A program made the position numbers and the translations under genes. Below the pieces are notes generated by a model that saw nothing but the letters and a program-made list of their open reading frames with translations, was not told the origin of the DNA and did no database searches. 64,000 nt of DNA from positions 186,001-250,000 of the forward strand of contig OW569386.1 in NCBI GenBank assembly GCA_937625935.1, written 5' to 3'. This document shows positions 47,613 to 55,259 of the stretch, piece after piece. This DNA comes from Tetramitus jugosus. Its lineage: Eukaryota; Protista; Heterolobosea. Every line of letters begins with the position of its first letter. The first letter of the stretch is position 1.

Positions 47613-49463
47613 TTAATAGTAATCTCTGTTGTTGGATTGTTCCTTCCTGGTGATGATAGTTGCGGCGTTGTCTTGATAAGGATCCTTTGCCTGAGGCGTT
47701 CCCGAGTAGTCAGAGTAGGACTCTGTCATTTCAGAGTGATCACTTGACTCCCATTCAGTTTCATCTGCATCTGCATAGGAATCCGATGCACCAGAGTCTT
47801 TCCTTCTCATTGAAGCAGGCGTGTTGTAATAGGGCTGTGTCTGATAGTGATAATAGGATTGAGTCCTATTGAATGGCATTGGCAAACGATTGTTTGAAGC
47901 GGTGTTGTTGGATGATGGGAAGCTCATACGGTTTCGCAAAAAGGCCTGTGATGAACTGTCAGTTCCTCTGGAGCTGCCCCAACCTCTGCCCAACACCCAC
48001 AACACACTACAAATGGGAATAATCTCCCATAGCACGAAACATAGCATAATCAAACACTTTCCTCTGTCCGTTTCTCGCAAATGTTGGAAACTCGTGTCCC
48101 AATTAATATGAGGCAACAATGGCAATATATCAATAATCGTCCGTGACAAGAACAACATTGTGTTCAACACAATCAACGGCAAAATCATTGGTCCATTGAG
48201 CTTGAGTGTCAATCCTGCACTTCCATTATTCCCATTGCTACCACCATTGACACTGCTATTCAGCATTGCAACCTGTTGTTGTTGCCTCGATTTCTTTCGA
48301 TGCAAAACGAGCAAAATCACTCCAAACAGCACCAACAACAGTCCCAACACTGAAAATCCAACACCAGTCACAATATTCATCGCATCCATCCACCTCGTCT
48401 TCACCATGATATTGTGCCTCAAACATAGCATGCTACAATAGGTCACCACCAATGCAAGCACCGATATCGTAATCAACACATAACACAAAATGACTGATAA
48501 ATAAAAACAGTTGCCTCTCATGCGTTTGATTCGTTTGGATTTCCAAAGTTTTTTCATTGGTCGTGCACAACAACAACACAACACTCCAAACAAGGAACGC
48601 TTGTCACTGCTTGCTCTGTTTTCTACATGTTGATGTGCATGGTATGGAAAATCACCACCACTACTACTACCACCACCATAATAATAGCCATGAGTCGTCC
48701 CTCCATAGTTTGACTGTTGACTCATCAAACTACTGTTTGGATGATAATGATTCGTTGCCGTCGAAGAAGAAGCACCAGTCATAGCACCACTCGTAGTGGT
48801 CAACGGTGCTACAGTGGTGGAGGCAGTCGTAGTGGTTGTCGTGTCTGGAATTTTCATTGCTTCGACTTGCCAAATGCGCAATGAATCATTGACTCGTTTC
48901 CGACTCGTGGCATCATAAATGACAAACACGATCCATACGAGCAACAAACCAAACACAAAAAATTGTAAACTGACTGGCACATAGAACAGAAAAAAGAGAG
49001 AACAGGAGCTAAAGGTGCCATCCAATGGAGCAAACCAGAAAATGGTTCTCAACAGCATCCATGCAAAGCTTAGAATAAGGAACCATGGATGAAAGGACAA
49101 TGGATTGTGTCTCTTGTAAAAATGAATGACGAGGAGCAATAGACAGGTCACTGTGAGGATACTGCTGAGTATACCAAGTATGATACGATCATAGGTGTAT
49201 GTAGACTCTGGTGGTGATGGATTGGTGACTATACTGTTGTTGTTGATCGCATAGCTATTGTAGAGAAACGTGTATTGCGGTTGCTGCTGCGTTGTAGTAG
49301 AGTAGGCGGAGAAATCGTAGGGTGAGTTTTGGCGGGAAAGTTGGGAGAGTGTCGGAAGAATATGGGAGGTGAGAATTCGATAGTAGGGAGAGAGAAAGTG
49401 AGCATCCACATCATACAGATTTGGTGTTGTTGATGATGTTGCTGTGGACGCACATTGGAACAT
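47613..49463 (-). CDS. GPR137/TOM1-like seven-TM protein
   Basis: 7 TM helices, WMLLRTIFW, P.SLQFFVFGLL, FLSR, WEIIP; Ser/acidic tail. Confidence 0.75.
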   Translation of the reverse strand: MFQCASTATSSTTPNLYDVDAHFLSPYYRILTSHILPTLSQLSRQNSPYDFSAYSTTTQQQPQYTFLYNSYAINNNSIVTNPSPPESTYTYDRIILGILSSILTVTCLLLLVIHFYKRHNPLSFHPWFLILSFAWMLLRTIFWFAPLDGTFSSCSLFFLFYVPVSLQFFVFGLLLVWIVFVIYDATSRKRVNDSLRIWQVEAMKIPDTTTTTTASTTVAPLTTTSGAMTGASSSTATNHYHPNSSLMSQQSNYGGTTHGYYYGGGSSSGGDFPYHAHQHVENRASSDKRSLFGVLCCCCARPMKKLWKSKRIKRMRGNCFYLSVILCYVLITISVLALVVTYCSMLCLRHNIMVKTRWMDAMNIVTGVGFSVLGLLLVLFGVILLVLHRKKSRQQQQVAMLNSSVNGGSNGNNGSAGLTLKLNGPMILPLIVLNTMLFLSRTIIDILPLLPHINWDTSFQHLRETDRGKCLIMLCFVLWEIIPICSVLWVLGRGWGSSRGTDSSSQAFLRNRMSFPSSNNTASNNRLPMPFNRTQSYYHYQTQPYYNTPASMRRKDSGASDSYADADETEWESSDHSEMTESYSDYSGTPQAKDPYQDNAATIITRKEQSNNRDYY

Positions 49464-49637: not shown

Positions 49638-51419
49638 ATGACAGATCACCAAATAATGGTACATCCCTCGAGTGTACAACAACTGCCTCTCCTTACGAGC
49701 TTACCTAACGATGTTATACCTCTTGTGGCACAATACCTGGACACATTGCATGACCGCATGAATCTTCGTCACTCGTGTTCCTTGATGATGGAGGTATCCA
49801 ACACGCTGACCGACAGGTTTTTCGAAGTGTCTGATGGATATGGAGAATCATTTGTCATTTTCTCGACTGATGTAGACTTTTATGTCAATTACTTTGTTGG
49901 GTTGTCTGGATCGTTGCGTTCAGAAATGGAAAGCACAGGTCACTTGAGCCCATTTACCAAATTGTTGTTGTCAATGATTGTTCGGAGCAATAGTCGACTC
50001 ATGGAACAATGTGGATTCTCGGTCAGTAAACATGTGACAGATGGTTTCTTTTATTGCATGATGCGCAGCTTGTTGGATGAGACGACTCCGAGCGAAATTG
50101 TGGACTTGTTCGTGAGTGAGTGTCGATACAATAGTTCCTTTTGGAATGAAATCGATCGTATCGCAGGTTACGTTTATCCAAGAATACTGTTCTATGAAAC
50201 GTTTGTGAGACTGTCCAAAAGCAAGAGATTGTCTCAGGTACTTCCCTTGTTGGTCAAAGAGGCTGGTATTCGAGTATTTTCGATCGACTTTTATCCAAGC
50301 CATGAGTTGATTCACAATTCCTCGGGACTCGTGTGCAATCACACTGTTGCATCATTTACAGTTGTTCATCTGGCAGCGTTTCTGAAAGATTATGATGCAC
50401 TACTGTGCATGCACACATTGAAGGAGGATGTTATCGATTCAGAATCGCATCACAATAGAACTGCGTTTCAGTTATGTTGTGAAGATCCCAACTTGTATGA
50501 TGTGGCTCTCTTTCTCCTTGAAAATTTTACTCTTGAAAGTTGTACTCAAGTACCAAGGAGGATTGCGTTGGATCAGACCCATCCTCTAGCTTCAAAAGTT
50601 ACTGAAACACTCGCAAAGAGAGGAATAGTGTGGGATTACAGTCCTACCGAGGAAATCGCTTTTGAAGATCTGGATCAATTGGAAGAGGCAGATTCACAGA
50701 GCTTAAGAGATGAATACGACAGTGAGATCCAGCTGAGTGATGATAGTGATGAGGAAGACTCTATTGGGATGAGAGATGAGCAGGGTTTGGACATTCTAGA
50801 TCTGTTTGATGCTGATATCGAGACCATCGAAGAGTTGGGCAAAATGTTTGAAGTCACTGTTGATCGGAATCCAGAAGAATATGTGGAGGAGTTCTATGCC
50901 TTAAGAAAAAAAGATGTACATATTCGCTCTCTAAAACCATGTGGTGTCACTGAAGAGGCTGCTAATAATGAGCCATGCGAAGAGGAACCGAAAGCCAAGA
51001 AACCAAAGCTAGTGCATGGTGTTGTATCTCGTGAGGAGCTGGTGATACCAAAGGAAGTATTTCGTGAGATTGTCCAGGAGGAAGTTCGCAACTACGCGGT
51101 AGATGATGTGTTCTCTCCTGCGGCTCTCGTGACAGTCCAGCGTGGATGTGAATTGTTTCTTTCAAATATGCTTGGACTAAGTGACAAATGCGTGTATATT
51201 AAGCCTATTAAGCACAAGGTTATAGGTGCACGGGACACATTGAGACACGAAGCATGGAGTCTAAGAGATATTTGTCCAGGGGATTCCACTCTAGCTGAAG
51301 AATTGGATGATGACGATGATTTCGATTCTGACTTCTCTTCCGTATCCTCAGATTCTTGCAGTGACATACTTCATGAATGCAGTGAGGATTTCTATGGTGA
51401 CGCGGATTACTATGAATAG
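49638..51419 (+). CDS. F-box + ankyrin + histone H3-fold fusion protein
   Basis: F-box LTSLPNDVIPLVAQYLDTLHDRMNLRHSC; ankyrin TVVHLAA...NRTAFQLCC...VALFLLE; H3-like fold ELVIPKEVFREIVQE...FSPAALVTVQRGCELFLSNML...IGARD at 51036-51236. Confidence 0.75.
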   Translation: MTDHQIMVHPSSVQQLPLLTSLPNDVIPLVAQYLDTLHDRMNLRHSCSLMMEVSNTLTDRFFEVSDGYGESFVIFSTDVDFYVNYFVGLSGSLRSEMESTGHLSPFTKLLLSMIVRSNSRLMEQCGFSVSKHVTDGFFYCMMRSLLDETTPSEIVDLFVSECRYNSSFWNEIDRIAGYVYPRILFYETFVRLSKSKRLSQVLPLLVKEAGIRVFSIDFYPSHELIHNSSGLVCNHTVASFTVVHLAAFLKDYDALLCMHTLKEDVIDSESHHNRTAFQLCCEDPNLYDVALFLLENFTLESCTQVPRRIALDQTHPLASKVTETLAKRGIVWDYSPTEEIAFEDLDQLEEADSQSLRDEYDSEIQLSDDSDEEDSIGMRDEQGLDILDLFDADIETIEELGKMFEVTVDRNPEEYVEEFYALRKKDVHIRSLKPCGVTEEAANNEPCEEEPKAKKPKLVHGVVSREELVIPKEVFREIVQEEVRNYAVDDVFSPAALVTVQRGCELFLSNMLGLSDKCVYIKPIKHKVIGARDTLRHEAWSLRDICPGDSTLAEELDDDDDFDSDFSSVSSDSCSDILHECSEDFYGDADYYE

Positions 51420-51465: not shown

Positions 51466-54400
51466 CTAATGAGATTTATAATCGGCATCAAAAGGAAGAA
51501 GAACAGCGGCAGTTCGCATGCGCTTACTCTTCACACGGTGCCAAGCTCGCACAAATCGAGCCCTGAATATATAACCAATCAGTCCAATGATGAGCAATAC
51601 AATGATATAGACTGTTAGTCCAGAACCATTGCTTTTCGCTTTCGGGAGCTCAGGCAGGCCTCCATAATGTACTTCTTTCTGTTCTTCAAGGATCAACGGA
51701 GGTTCTTGCTGTTTTTCTTGTTGCTGTTGTTGTTCTGGCACTTGCTGCTCTTGCTGTGGCTCTTGCACAGGCTGTTGCGGTACAGGATTTGGTTCTTGTG
51801 GCTCAATTTTTGGTGCGATCTGTGTTTGTGGACCTCGAACTTCCTTTGGCTGGTCGACAACTATCGGAATGTTTTGAGCTTCCAATTCTCTTAACAAGTT
51901 ATCCTCATTCAGTTTCATTTGAACCAAGAATGAAATAATACCGTTCGCTGGCACTGTGAAAGCGTGTTTGGCACCTGGAGTATTGAGTTGAGCTCCTTCA
52001 ATGGATAGAAGCTTTCGCTGACCTTGCACCATTCTTTCTTCTTTCTCCTTTAGTTTCTTAGCATTTGCTATGGCTTCATCTGACAAGAATACACCTTCTT
52101 CCTCAGTGTTTTGGTTCGCATCTTTGCTGCCACCTGCCACATTTGTTGTAAAAGAGAAGCTGATTTCCTTTCCTGCTTTGAACTTTGGTCTGAGATCATG
52201 GATAGTCTTCCGATTTGATGGAATATCATACACCAAATTCAGGGACTTACGTCTGATGTTCGAGATTGATAAATAGTTTGGTTTGAACAGGTTATCTAAA
52301 TCCACTGATATATCTTCCACAGGAGAGAAGTTTTGAATTCGTAATTGAATGTCTTCCGAAACGTAATCACGAGGTGACAGGGTCAAAATGTGCAAGTTGC
52401 TGTTCAGGTTCTCCGCTAGAGCATGAAACTCAGGTCTGTAATTCGCTGGACTATCTGTCACAAAAAGATTCAATGGTTGATTGATCATGTGCGAAATGGA
52501 GTGCATCCTAGAGACTGATTTTGCACTGAATCCCTTCTTAGTTTTCAACTTGAAGAAGAATGGCACGACCAAAGTATCTGAGTCATCGTTTGCTTGACTC
52601 ATACCTCGACCATCGTCCTTTGCTAAACGACGATGCACCATAATTTCCAATTCGTTGCCCCATGTAGTTACACCCATTGTGTGACCCGTCAAGACAACTA
52701 ATTGAGCATGATCGTACATGTAGATGGCACCGGCTTGTGTTGGGTAAAAATGTCCTGGAAGTGGCGCATCGGATTGCACAATTCGTCTCACTATATCCTT
52801 TCCGTCATACACCAACAGCTTTCCTGTCTTGTCTGATGCGACACCAAATCGAGTAGTCAACTCAGTGTTGCTAGGTAGAGTATGAATATCATAATTCATC
52901 TGGATGTAATCCGATGCGATATCACCATACTTGGAGGTAAGTGGCAACCGGATTGTCATCGTTAATCTTGCAGTTCCAATGATTGCTTGTTGGAACAAAG
53001 GACCACGGGTGATATGGATGTAGAATACTTTGTCATCGAGCAGAGACTGTGCTGCTCCTTCACTTCGGAAAATATAACTACCACTGCGTTGTGTGCGATA
53101 TTCCATGAATTGCTTCTTCACTCTGTGAATAGTACCGGCCACCTTCTCTTGAACAGAAGAAATGTAACCCGTCTTTGGATCCAAGTTTACGATATAGTGA
53201 TCATTTTCAATGGCAGGATTACCACCTTGTAAGTTTGTGAGATCACTTACTCTTATTGATTGAGGCACAAATACTGGTTTTTCATAGTCAGATTTCGATA
53301 GCTCAGTTGGTAGGAAGACAACATTTTCAGTTTGTTCATGTTCTTTCTTCTCGGTCGTTTCGTGAGATAATACTGTATACTTTTGGATTGCATAACCAGG
53401 AATAATCGCCAAGAAATAAATATCGTACCGACCAGTGTGCGCATAGTTGCCGTCAACAAATGTTAGTACGGGAACTGATTGCGAAGGAACAATTTCCCCC
53501 TTGGCATTCTTAACGGTTGCATATGGTCCATGACTGCGGATACGAATGATTCGAACACGGCGATCTGAATCACTATTGTGAACAATGAGGCCATATTCCT
53601 TGTTCTTTTCTAAGGTCATTTCGACTACTTCTTTCAATCCAGTACCACAATTTTCTGTACATAGAAGCGCATTGATCATTGTTTTCTGAATAGAGTTCGA
53701 CTTTGAAAGAACATTTGCCAATCGTTTCATATAATCATGGTACACTTCTTTCCTGCAAGTACCAGTGATACCATCATGATGCTGAATGAGAGCTACATTT
53801 TCTCTACTCGTCTGAATATCAGCAAAAATGTCAATCCATTCGGTTTCTCCGGCTGATGGCAACACATTCTCAGATAAACGAGTAAATAAAAGTGCATTCT
53901 CGGCGGCATTCAATGCACTCTCAGCATCTCTCGCACGCTTCTTCAAATTTGGCAAAGTGGCATAATAACCGGTCCAATATGAATCTTCATTGTCGGCATA
54001 AGGTACAAAATCTTGACGAACGACTGGTAGTTCAACATTATCTCGCCTCAAATCAGACAGCATTGCATCAAAATACTCTCCCACTGTTCCATAACGAATA
54101 GTGACCTCTCCCTTAAAATTCTCATTAATATACTCAATCACTTGATCCATATTCGTAAATTGCACATCTGCATTCTTAAACTTAAAGTCATCGCCAAACG
54201 GTATCATGATACGTTTTGTTCTATAGTGTGCTGATCTCCTCCTCACTTCATCTACAAACACCTTTGACCGACTCTCAACGTTTGATTTCGTAATACGCTG
54301 CACACCACTATTCTCAAAATCAAAGCCAAACACTGCACTGTAATGCGTGTGCAACACATGAGTAAAAATCTCTGTAGAGTTTGCATTGTTTGCCGATTTG

Positions 54401-55259
54401 AACCGCCACAAGAATTCCAACGCCTTTTCATTCTTCATCTGTGCCTTGATACGATGATGCACACGATTAATCACAATCGAATCCAATCCCATCTCTGCAT
54501 ACAATTGCGCCACTCGACCATCATGACCAAACGGATCAATCTGCCACGCGTGCTTTATACGAATACCGAATCGTTCCAACAAGTATTGATGACCAATCGT
54601 CATTTGATCAATGATGGATGTATAGCTCGGACATGCTTCATCATTCTGAACCCAACCACCACCCACCATCTCCAACCGATTCTCCCCAATCAAATCATGA
54701 ACAATTTGTTGCGTTTCAAAATTTTGAATTTCGAACCACTACCAATAACAAAAAAAATCAACATCGTTACCACCAACAGAGCTTTTTTTTTTCGACAGAT
54801 ATGAGAGAGAAACAACAACAAATGAATCATGTCAATTGTAGTACTACAAACCTCCTTAAAATACAAGGTATCTGCCCAAACAAACTTTCTGTGCTTATTA
54901 TTCTTGATGGCAGAGATAATGTTACTCAAGATTTGAAACACTTCTTGTTGATAGCCCCTCACTGATTTCAACCAACCCTATATACGTACGATTATCATCA
55001 TCATCATCATCAATTCTTCTTTTGTTAATATCACAAAGAATCATAATCAACTAAAAAAATAAACAAAGCTTTCAAAGGTAAAACGTACGGGATCAGTGTG
55101 CGAATGTGGAATAATATAGACATCGATTGGATTGCTTTGCTTTGCACTTGTAAAGACTGATGATGACGATGATGAAAAGTGAAAAATGACAATGATGGAT
55201 AACAACAGAGAGATGACCAACAATGATAGTGTTGGTTGTTTGGATGTTTGTCTGTTCAT
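51466..55259 (-). CDS. GH38 class II alpha-mannosidase with C-terminal TM anchor; introns 55088-54978 and 54851-54739
   Basis: Spliced PHSHTDP-GWLK, GGGWVQNDEA, WQIDPFGH, PFGDDF, YWTGYY, QHHDGITGT, HRRL..DD.RG. Confidence 0.92.

Follow-up and report, generated by a model that had tools for sequence, protein, structure and literature searches.

The window analysed here, a 64,000-nucleotide stretch of the genome of the heterolobosean amoeba Tetramitus jugosus (assembly GCA_937625935.1, contig OW569386.1, positions 186,001 to 250,000 of the forward strand), contains a gene whose 593-residue product joins an F-box-like motif, an ankyrin solenoid and a histone H3-derived fold in one polypeptide (Table 1). 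By its sequence, the C-terminal fold descends from canonical H3, and the F-box/ankyrin/fold architecture is conserved and under purifying selection. The reading we favour, to which we give a little less than an even chance, is that the protein is a nuclear substrate receptor of the Skp1-cullin-F-box (SCF) type, which would use its H3 copy to pair with histone H4 and so tie unpaired or new H4 to the ligase for ubiquitination. The combination of F-box, ankyrin domain and H3 fold is apparently undescribed. From the N- to the C-terminus the elements follow in the order F-box-like motif, ankyrin solenoid of about 260 residues, acidic linker with a conserved motif, putative nuclear localisation signal (NLS) PKAKKPK, H3-derived fold and acidic Ser/Asp tail. 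The elements described in an earlier, sequence-only reading of this DNA are all present, namely an F-box motif (LPNDVIPLVAQYLD, residues 22-35), D/E-rich tracts, PKAKKPK (residues 451-457), the segment ELVIPKEVFREIVQEEV...VIGARD (residues 467-532) and an acidic tail (residues 549-593).

Table 1. Features of the F-box/ankyrin/H3-fold gene, in window positions
Feature	Residues	Positions	Strand	Basis
Whole gene	593 plus stop codon	49638..51419	+	single uninterrupted open reading frame (ORF)
F-box-like motif (LPNDVIPLVAQYLDTLHDRMNLRHSCSLMMEVS)	18-60	49689..49817	+	sub-cut-off Pfam scores, family matches, predicted helices
Degenerate ankyrin-repeat solenoid	about 78-340	49869..50657	+	AlphaFold2 (AF2) model, structural search, Ank_2 in relatives
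Conserved acidic motif RDEQGLDI..DL..D.E.IE.L...FE	379-405	50772..50852	+	inside D/E-rich linker, residues 341-450
NLS-like PKAKKPK	451-457	50988..51008	+	motif type
H3-derived histone fold	465-545	51030..51272	+	family profile, H3 alignment, dN/dS, H4 model
Acidic Ser/Asp tail with conserved DSDF..S..SSD signature	549-593	51282..51416	+	family alignment

The H3-derived fold and its family

The likeness of the C-terminal segment to H3 exceeds chance at the level of the family only, since the E-value of the single sequence is weak and that of a nine-sequence profile is 2.7e-15. Taken singly, the protein scores E 0.11 against the Pfam Histone family (PF00125), which is under the curated cut-off, and its C-terminal piece matches H3 chains exclusively among PDB sequences, with a best E of 0.012; a profile of three sequences matches PDB H3 at E 1.9e-4. 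The profile of the nine folds aligns to H3 residues 58-128 (end of αN to α3), all 60 PDB matches listed for it are H3, and the best family member reaches E 4.8e-8 against PF00125. The H3 fold with few gaps that had been read from the single sequence is thus borne out by the family profile, and the score of the protein itself stays weak. In the genome of T. jugosus the same profile finds the gene under study (A), its paralogue B, five canonical H3 genes (E 2.8e-14 to 2.4e-11) and a CenH3-like gene (E 2.4e-4), and nothing further.

The family is small and has so far been seen in the genome of T. jugosus, in one NCBI assembly and in a few metagenomes. The genome encodes two paralogues of the protein: B (L023:1447-3288), with 61% identity and an identical layout, and C (L024, minus strand; G000:C44:288792-289835), with 53% identity across residues 14-375 and without the histone-fold segment. 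A word-index homologue search found an outside relative, P0001, with 33% identity in assembly GCA_037189345.1; such searches returned one match from the single protein and two from the family alignment, and are uninformative on absence because acidic low-complexity words swamp the candidates. When 1.84 billion representatives were searched exhaustively with a profile, 12 proteins matched. Among them, six full-length metagenome relatives share the layout of the amoeba protein (P0004, P0007, P0008, P0009, P0010 and P0011), and two fold-bearing members were found in one metagenome sample; P0012, by contrast, is a concatemer of real histones, the H3 part of which is matched by the whole-protein profile at E 1.1e-4 (1.84 billion proteins). 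When relatives are searched for the same architecture, a check that the sequence-only reading had proposed, F-box, ankyrin and Histone matches do recur across the members, each of which is a continuous ORF. Two separate genes are argued against, because this continuous layout recurs in nine proteins of different organisms. Between A and B, the ratio of non-synonymous to synonymous substitution rates (dN/dS) is 0.25 for the whole gene, this and the other ratios given here being approximate at a dS of about 1.1-1.4.

Several observations concern individual members. In paralogue C a TGA (about L024:2083-2085) replaces the Trp codon of NSSFW, which is found in relatives and in the near-identical P0002 from another sample, and an NLS-like EPQAKRTK joins the acidic DSDFSS tail directly, the fold being missing. 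In the distant relative P0006 (305 residues) the fold is missing just as cleanly. The true ORF of P0010 (L025:2926-4950) starts with the F-box motif, which the database gene call removed by beginning 25 codons late; on this metagenome contig P0010, the most H3-like member of the family, immediately follows another F-box gene (1010-2518, PF12937).

In the protein under study the fold spans the end of αN (SREELVIPK), α1, the loop L1 and α2 without gaps relative to H3. The following region, loop L2 and α3, is recognisably H3-like in P0004, P0007, P0008 and P0010, as seen in the alignment with own-genome H3 (HYKRDYIHVRDFQYALKKR vs HAKRVTIMPKDIQLARRIR), and P0010 retains LLEIASDYKTDIAF, which is nearly the own-genome H3 sequence. 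In A and B this region has diverged, with a dN/dS of 0.67, as opposed to 0.24 for α1-α2. Among the nine members the identity of the fold is 10-53%, and the residues that are kept and lost follow a pattern (human H3 numbering): R63 is replaced by Pro in eight members as part of a conserved IPK, R69 and R83 are lost family-wide, and R72 is retained in five, while K64, A88, Q93, the invariant E97 and the hydrophobic core are retained. In eight of the nine, the residue after the N-cap Ser/Thr of α2 is Pro. The H3 tail and most of αN are absent, and acidic tracts and a KKxK patch stand in the place of the tail. To judge by these residues, the fold is suited to protein pairing and not to DNA wrapping.

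The divergence of L2-α3 raises the question of whether the segment is no more than the decaying remnant of an H3 gene captured in the past, functionless today. The relaxed dN/dS of this region points that way, as does the complete loss of the fold in C and in P0006; however, α1-α2 is constrained like the whole protein (0.24 vs 0.25), and the fold has been kept in nine members despite their low identity, so that we regard a relic as very improbable.

Other identities of the fold were considered. The protein is neither a nucleosomal variant of H3 nor a CenH3, given the loss of R63, R69 and R83 and the lack of a tail, and canonical H3 outranks the CenH3-like gene in the profile scores. CENP-T is likewise rejected, since CENP-T_C (PF15511) reaches only E 0.12 in one of nine members, as compared with 2.7e-15 for H3. 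The same applies to a TBP-associated factor (TAF), with CENP-T_C, TAF and TFIID_20kDa each at E 0.03-0.13 in one member each and PF00125 at best at 4.8e-8. The CenH3-like gene of this genome (L007; G000:C11:189452-189757, plus strand) encodes an H3 variant whose N-terminal tail is long and rich in Ser, Pro and Asn, with a PF00125 match at E 6.9e-32, so that a separate candidate for the centromeric H3 exists. A further H3 fold (PF00125 E 6.7e-5) is found in L017 (G000:C22:232092-232415, minus strand; open frame of 397 residues), with Lys/Ala-rich, H1-like tails on both sides.

F-box, ankyrin solenoid and acidic regions

The F-box is more readily recognised in the family than in this protein. 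Against the Pfam F-box families the whole protein scores E 0.03-0.18, under the curated cut-offs, and the isolated N-terminus scores E 0.008-0.017 against F-box_4, F-box-like and F-box, with 14-16 bits at cut-offs of 20.5 and 24.3. Among ten N-termini of the family, nine match F-box-like (PF12937) and eight match F-box (PF00646), with a best E of 2.4e-6. The N-terminal F-box that had been claimed from the sequence therefore stands as a motif that is present and matched across the family, but not as a domain that passes the Pfam cut-off in this protein. Three short helices are predicted here at low confidence (residues 27-33, 37-46 and 48-56). A search of the PDB with an N-terminal profile ranks the F-box of Legionella AnkB first, though its E of 0.81 is not significant. 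The dN/dS of the F-box between A and B is 0.28, and a Skp1 gene is encoded in the genome (G000:C12:150688-150831).

These scores bear on the possibility that the protein has no role in a ligase and instead chaperones or buffers H4 or belongs to the chromatin, with an F-box that is either degenerate or, like that of yeast Ctf13 or Rcy1, binds Skp1 without being part of a cullin ligase. The sub-cut-off scores would fit such a role, and the long acidic tracts recall those of histone chaperones in general. Yet the F-box signature persists in nine of ten members across deep divergence and is under constraint, a separate CenH3-like gene exists, and CENP-T_C lies far below H3, all of which makes a non-ligase role quite improbable in our view.

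The ankyrin part is larger than had been read from the sequence, where one or two repeats were noted; instead, a solenoid of about 260 residues is predicted. An AF2 model from an 11-sequence alignment shows a helical solenoid over residues 80-330, with a predicted local distance difference test score (pLDDT) of mostly 85-97 and a mean of 76 for the model; a full-length AF2 model from three sequences, at pLDDT 42, was not used. In a VIA-wide structural search nearly all of the 50 best matches are ankyrin domains, with 190-216 residues aligned (model residues 78-340) and Z-scores of 7.5-9.8, a middling range for repeat proteins. A Foldseek search of the N-terminal model against the PDB gave no match at E <= 0.001. 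Six of nine relatives contain Pfam Ank_2 (PF12796; best E 6.3e-13), and the nearest ESM Atlas clusters are annotated Ank and 'F-box domain-containing protein'.

Within the acidic linker the conserved motif takes the general form RDE[EQ]G[LI]..(8-14)..FE, of which E381, G383 and F404 are invariant across nine very divergent members, and its dN/dS against paralogue B is 0.15. A profile of the region (residues 371-441) gave no significant match in the PDB, the best being FANCM at E 0.18. A histone doublet, with H4 and H3 fused as in Marseilleviridae and the acidic motif as a hidden H4-like fold, was rejected, as the PDB profile search gave no H4 match. At the position of the NLS a basic KKxK patch is found in eight of nine members, and nuclear import would proceed through PKAKKPK.

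Proposed pairing with H4 and the possible role of the protein

Histone folds are obligate dimers, and the partner of H3 is H4, for which the genome of T. jugosus contains three identical genes. A sequence search of this genome gave no H4-like fold beyond these three canonical genes, apart from one spurious Gly-rich match in a large unrelated ORF. When the fold (residues 455-550) is modelled together with residues 26-109 of own-genome H4, the interaction score ipSAE (interaction prediction score from aligned errors) is 0.69, 0.68 and 0.70 in three runs, as compared with 0.00 for the best control, and the pair passes a mark that is reached by 51 of 78 solved complexes and by 2 of 108 mismatched pairs. 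The runs have a contact agreement of at least 67% and a partner pLDDT of at least 71. The modelled H4 interface covers residues 466-516 of the fold, and the tightest contacts are formed between residues 492-500 (L1 and the start of α2) and residues 87-97 of H4 (L2 and α3), in a geometry that is canonical for H3-H4. Given that the arginines that hold DNA are lost while the hydrophobic α1-L1-α2 core of the handshake is kept, the fold would, according to the model, most probably act as a soluble H3 mimic that pairs with H4 outside the nucleosome.

A different partner is conceivable: a second copy of the fold, paralogue B, or a histone-fold protein other than H4. In that case the fold would be no more than a dimerisation module of the receptor, like the D-domains of other F-box proteins. 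The genome does contain two fold-bearing paralogues, two members co-occur in one metagenome sample, and the complex model cannot tell which family member binds. Against this, H3, from which the fold descends, pairs with H4, H4 is modelled in the canonical position, a sequence search of the genome found no H4-like fold beyond the three canonical genes, and the conserved motif upstream of the fold is not H4-like. We consider a dimerisation module distinctly unlikely.

In the SCF receptor reading, which we favour, the F-box would dock on Skp1/cullin, and the ankyrin solenoid, its fold taken from the model, would offer a second binding surface. The H3-like fold would take up H4 by the handshake outside the nucleosome, and the flanking acidic tracts may cover the basic surfaces of H4. 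H4 that is unpaired with H3, or newly made, would thereby be tied to the ligase and ubiquitinated. A more far-reaching version, which we hold to be rather doubtful, is a lineage-specific partner-mimic surveillance in heterolobosean amoebae, in which a ligase receptor with a DNA-blind copy of H3 would sense, capture and mark any unpaired H4 for destruction through the obligate handshake itself, and the paralogues without the fold would compete with it or regulate it.

Several points weigh against the receptor reading. The F-box part of the AF2 model has a pLDDT of only about 50, a low confidence that is common for F-boxes without Skp1; the protein itself does not reach the Pfam Ank families, and its F-box and Histone matches stay under the curated cut-offs. 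The L2-α3 region is poorly conserved in this lineage and lies outside the confident H4 interface, which leaves the fold possibly incomplete in this protein. At the modelled interface, H3-like residues are enriched only as a trend (p = 0.057). Moreover, the pass of the complex model may reflect memory of solved H3-H4 structures, and it is blind to which H4-like partner binds; with this reservation, the H4 handshake proposed by the sequence-only reading is supported by the model. Finally, the histone handshake is a nearly irreversible, co-folded dimer, unlike the usual reversible recognition of a degron by an F-box protein.

This last point leads to the main rival, in which H4 is not the substrate but a permanent subunit, so that a DNA-free pseudo H3-H4 dimer is displayed on the ligase as a decoy or bait, and its binders are ubiquitinated. 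Conceivable prey are chaperones, enzymes that modify H4, and histone-binding factors from parasites or viruses. As is established for histone folds, so stable a handshake suits a constitutive subunit better than a substrate, and both the fold-H4 complex model and the loss of the DNA-contact arginines apply equally to such a decoy. In addition, paralogue C and P0006 do without the fold, evidence that the F-box/ankyrin part can exist by itself and that the fold is a display module added to it. On the other hand, α3 is diverged in this lineage, and since α3 of H3 bears the contact surface for Asf1 and for H3-H3', a faithful H3-H4 mimic is doubtful here; nor did a candidate prey come to light. We judge the decoy unlikely on balance, with self- or paralogue dimerisation, a non-ligase chaperone and a functionless relic less likely still.

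Relation to known systems and the locus

Compared with canonical H3 (PF00125; PDB 1KX5/3AFA chain A), the family profile aligns over residues 58-128 and is gap-free in α1-L1-α2, and the core is kept together with K64, Q93 and E97. The amoeba fold differs from H3 in that it has neither the tail nor a full αN, has lost R63, R69 and R83, is diverged in L2-α3 and is placed within a 593-residue protein between acidic tracts. F-box proteins recruit substrates through WD40, leucine-rich repeat (LRR), kelch, ankyrin and similar domains. An N-terminal F-box followed by an ankyrin domain is also found in Legionella AnkB (PDB 5K35) and in fungal F-box/Ank proteins, but these are without a histone fold, and the ankyrin domain of the amoeba protein is longer and degenerate. 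CENP-T and the H3-like TAF9 share with it a long non-histone N-terminal part and a C-terminal histone fold; however, CENP-T and the TAFs have no F-box, and the amoeba fold is specifically H3-derived.

SCF ligases have been linked to histone-fold proteins before. The Drosophila F-box protein Ppa reportedly targets CID. In yeast, SCF-Met30/Cdc4 targets the histone Cse4, which does not form part of the receptor (PMC7032732). In the systems of Met30/Cdc4 and Ppa the histone is recognised by WD40 or LRR domains, whereas the amoeba receptor itself carries the histone fold and would capture its partner by dimerisation. A separate case is SCF-FBXL17, which performs dimerisation quality control of BTB domains, its LRRs wrapping the BTB monomer. 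It is alike by analogy only, in that an F-box receptor checks whether a domain that must dimerise is properly paired, and differs in that the amoeba protein would sense through a copy of the natural partner fold. Full-text searches of the literature brought up no description of a histone fold within an F-box protein, SCF-Met30/Cdc4 on Cse4 being the nearest system. If the H3 copy does pair with H4, the protein would be a natural ligase that recognises a subunit of an obligate dimer via a built-in partner fold, with a bearing on the disposal of unpaired, toxic histones and on orphan-subunit quality control in general, and H3 would have been exapted into a soluble, non-nucleosomal binding module. 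Partner-mimic surveillance, if true, would amount to a new principle of orphan-subunit recognition, the natural partner fold of the substrate being part of the ligase.

The eukaryotic genome that carries the gene has 26.35 Mb in 56 contigs and is dense in genes and poor in introns. As had been claimed from the sequence, it is one unbroken ORF, which runs from the ATG at 49638 to a stop at 51417-51419 with zero internal stops. The frame is open upstream to 49455, with its first ATG at 49638. A divergent upstream gene begins at 49463, 174 bp away, and a downstream gene on the opposite strand ends at 51466, 46 bp beyond, so that the gene is compact and single, its open frame being bounded closely by these neighbours. 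Evidence of its transcription comes from four soil metatranscriptome runs, the RNA contigs of which contain 21-31% of the sampled words of the gene. The neighbouring large ORF (window 51466-54693, minus strand) is GH38 alpha-mannosidase-like, as judged from its translation only, and has a Gln/Pro/Glu-rich stretch ahead of an apparent transmembrane helix at the C-terminus, LTVYIIVLLIIGLIGYIF.

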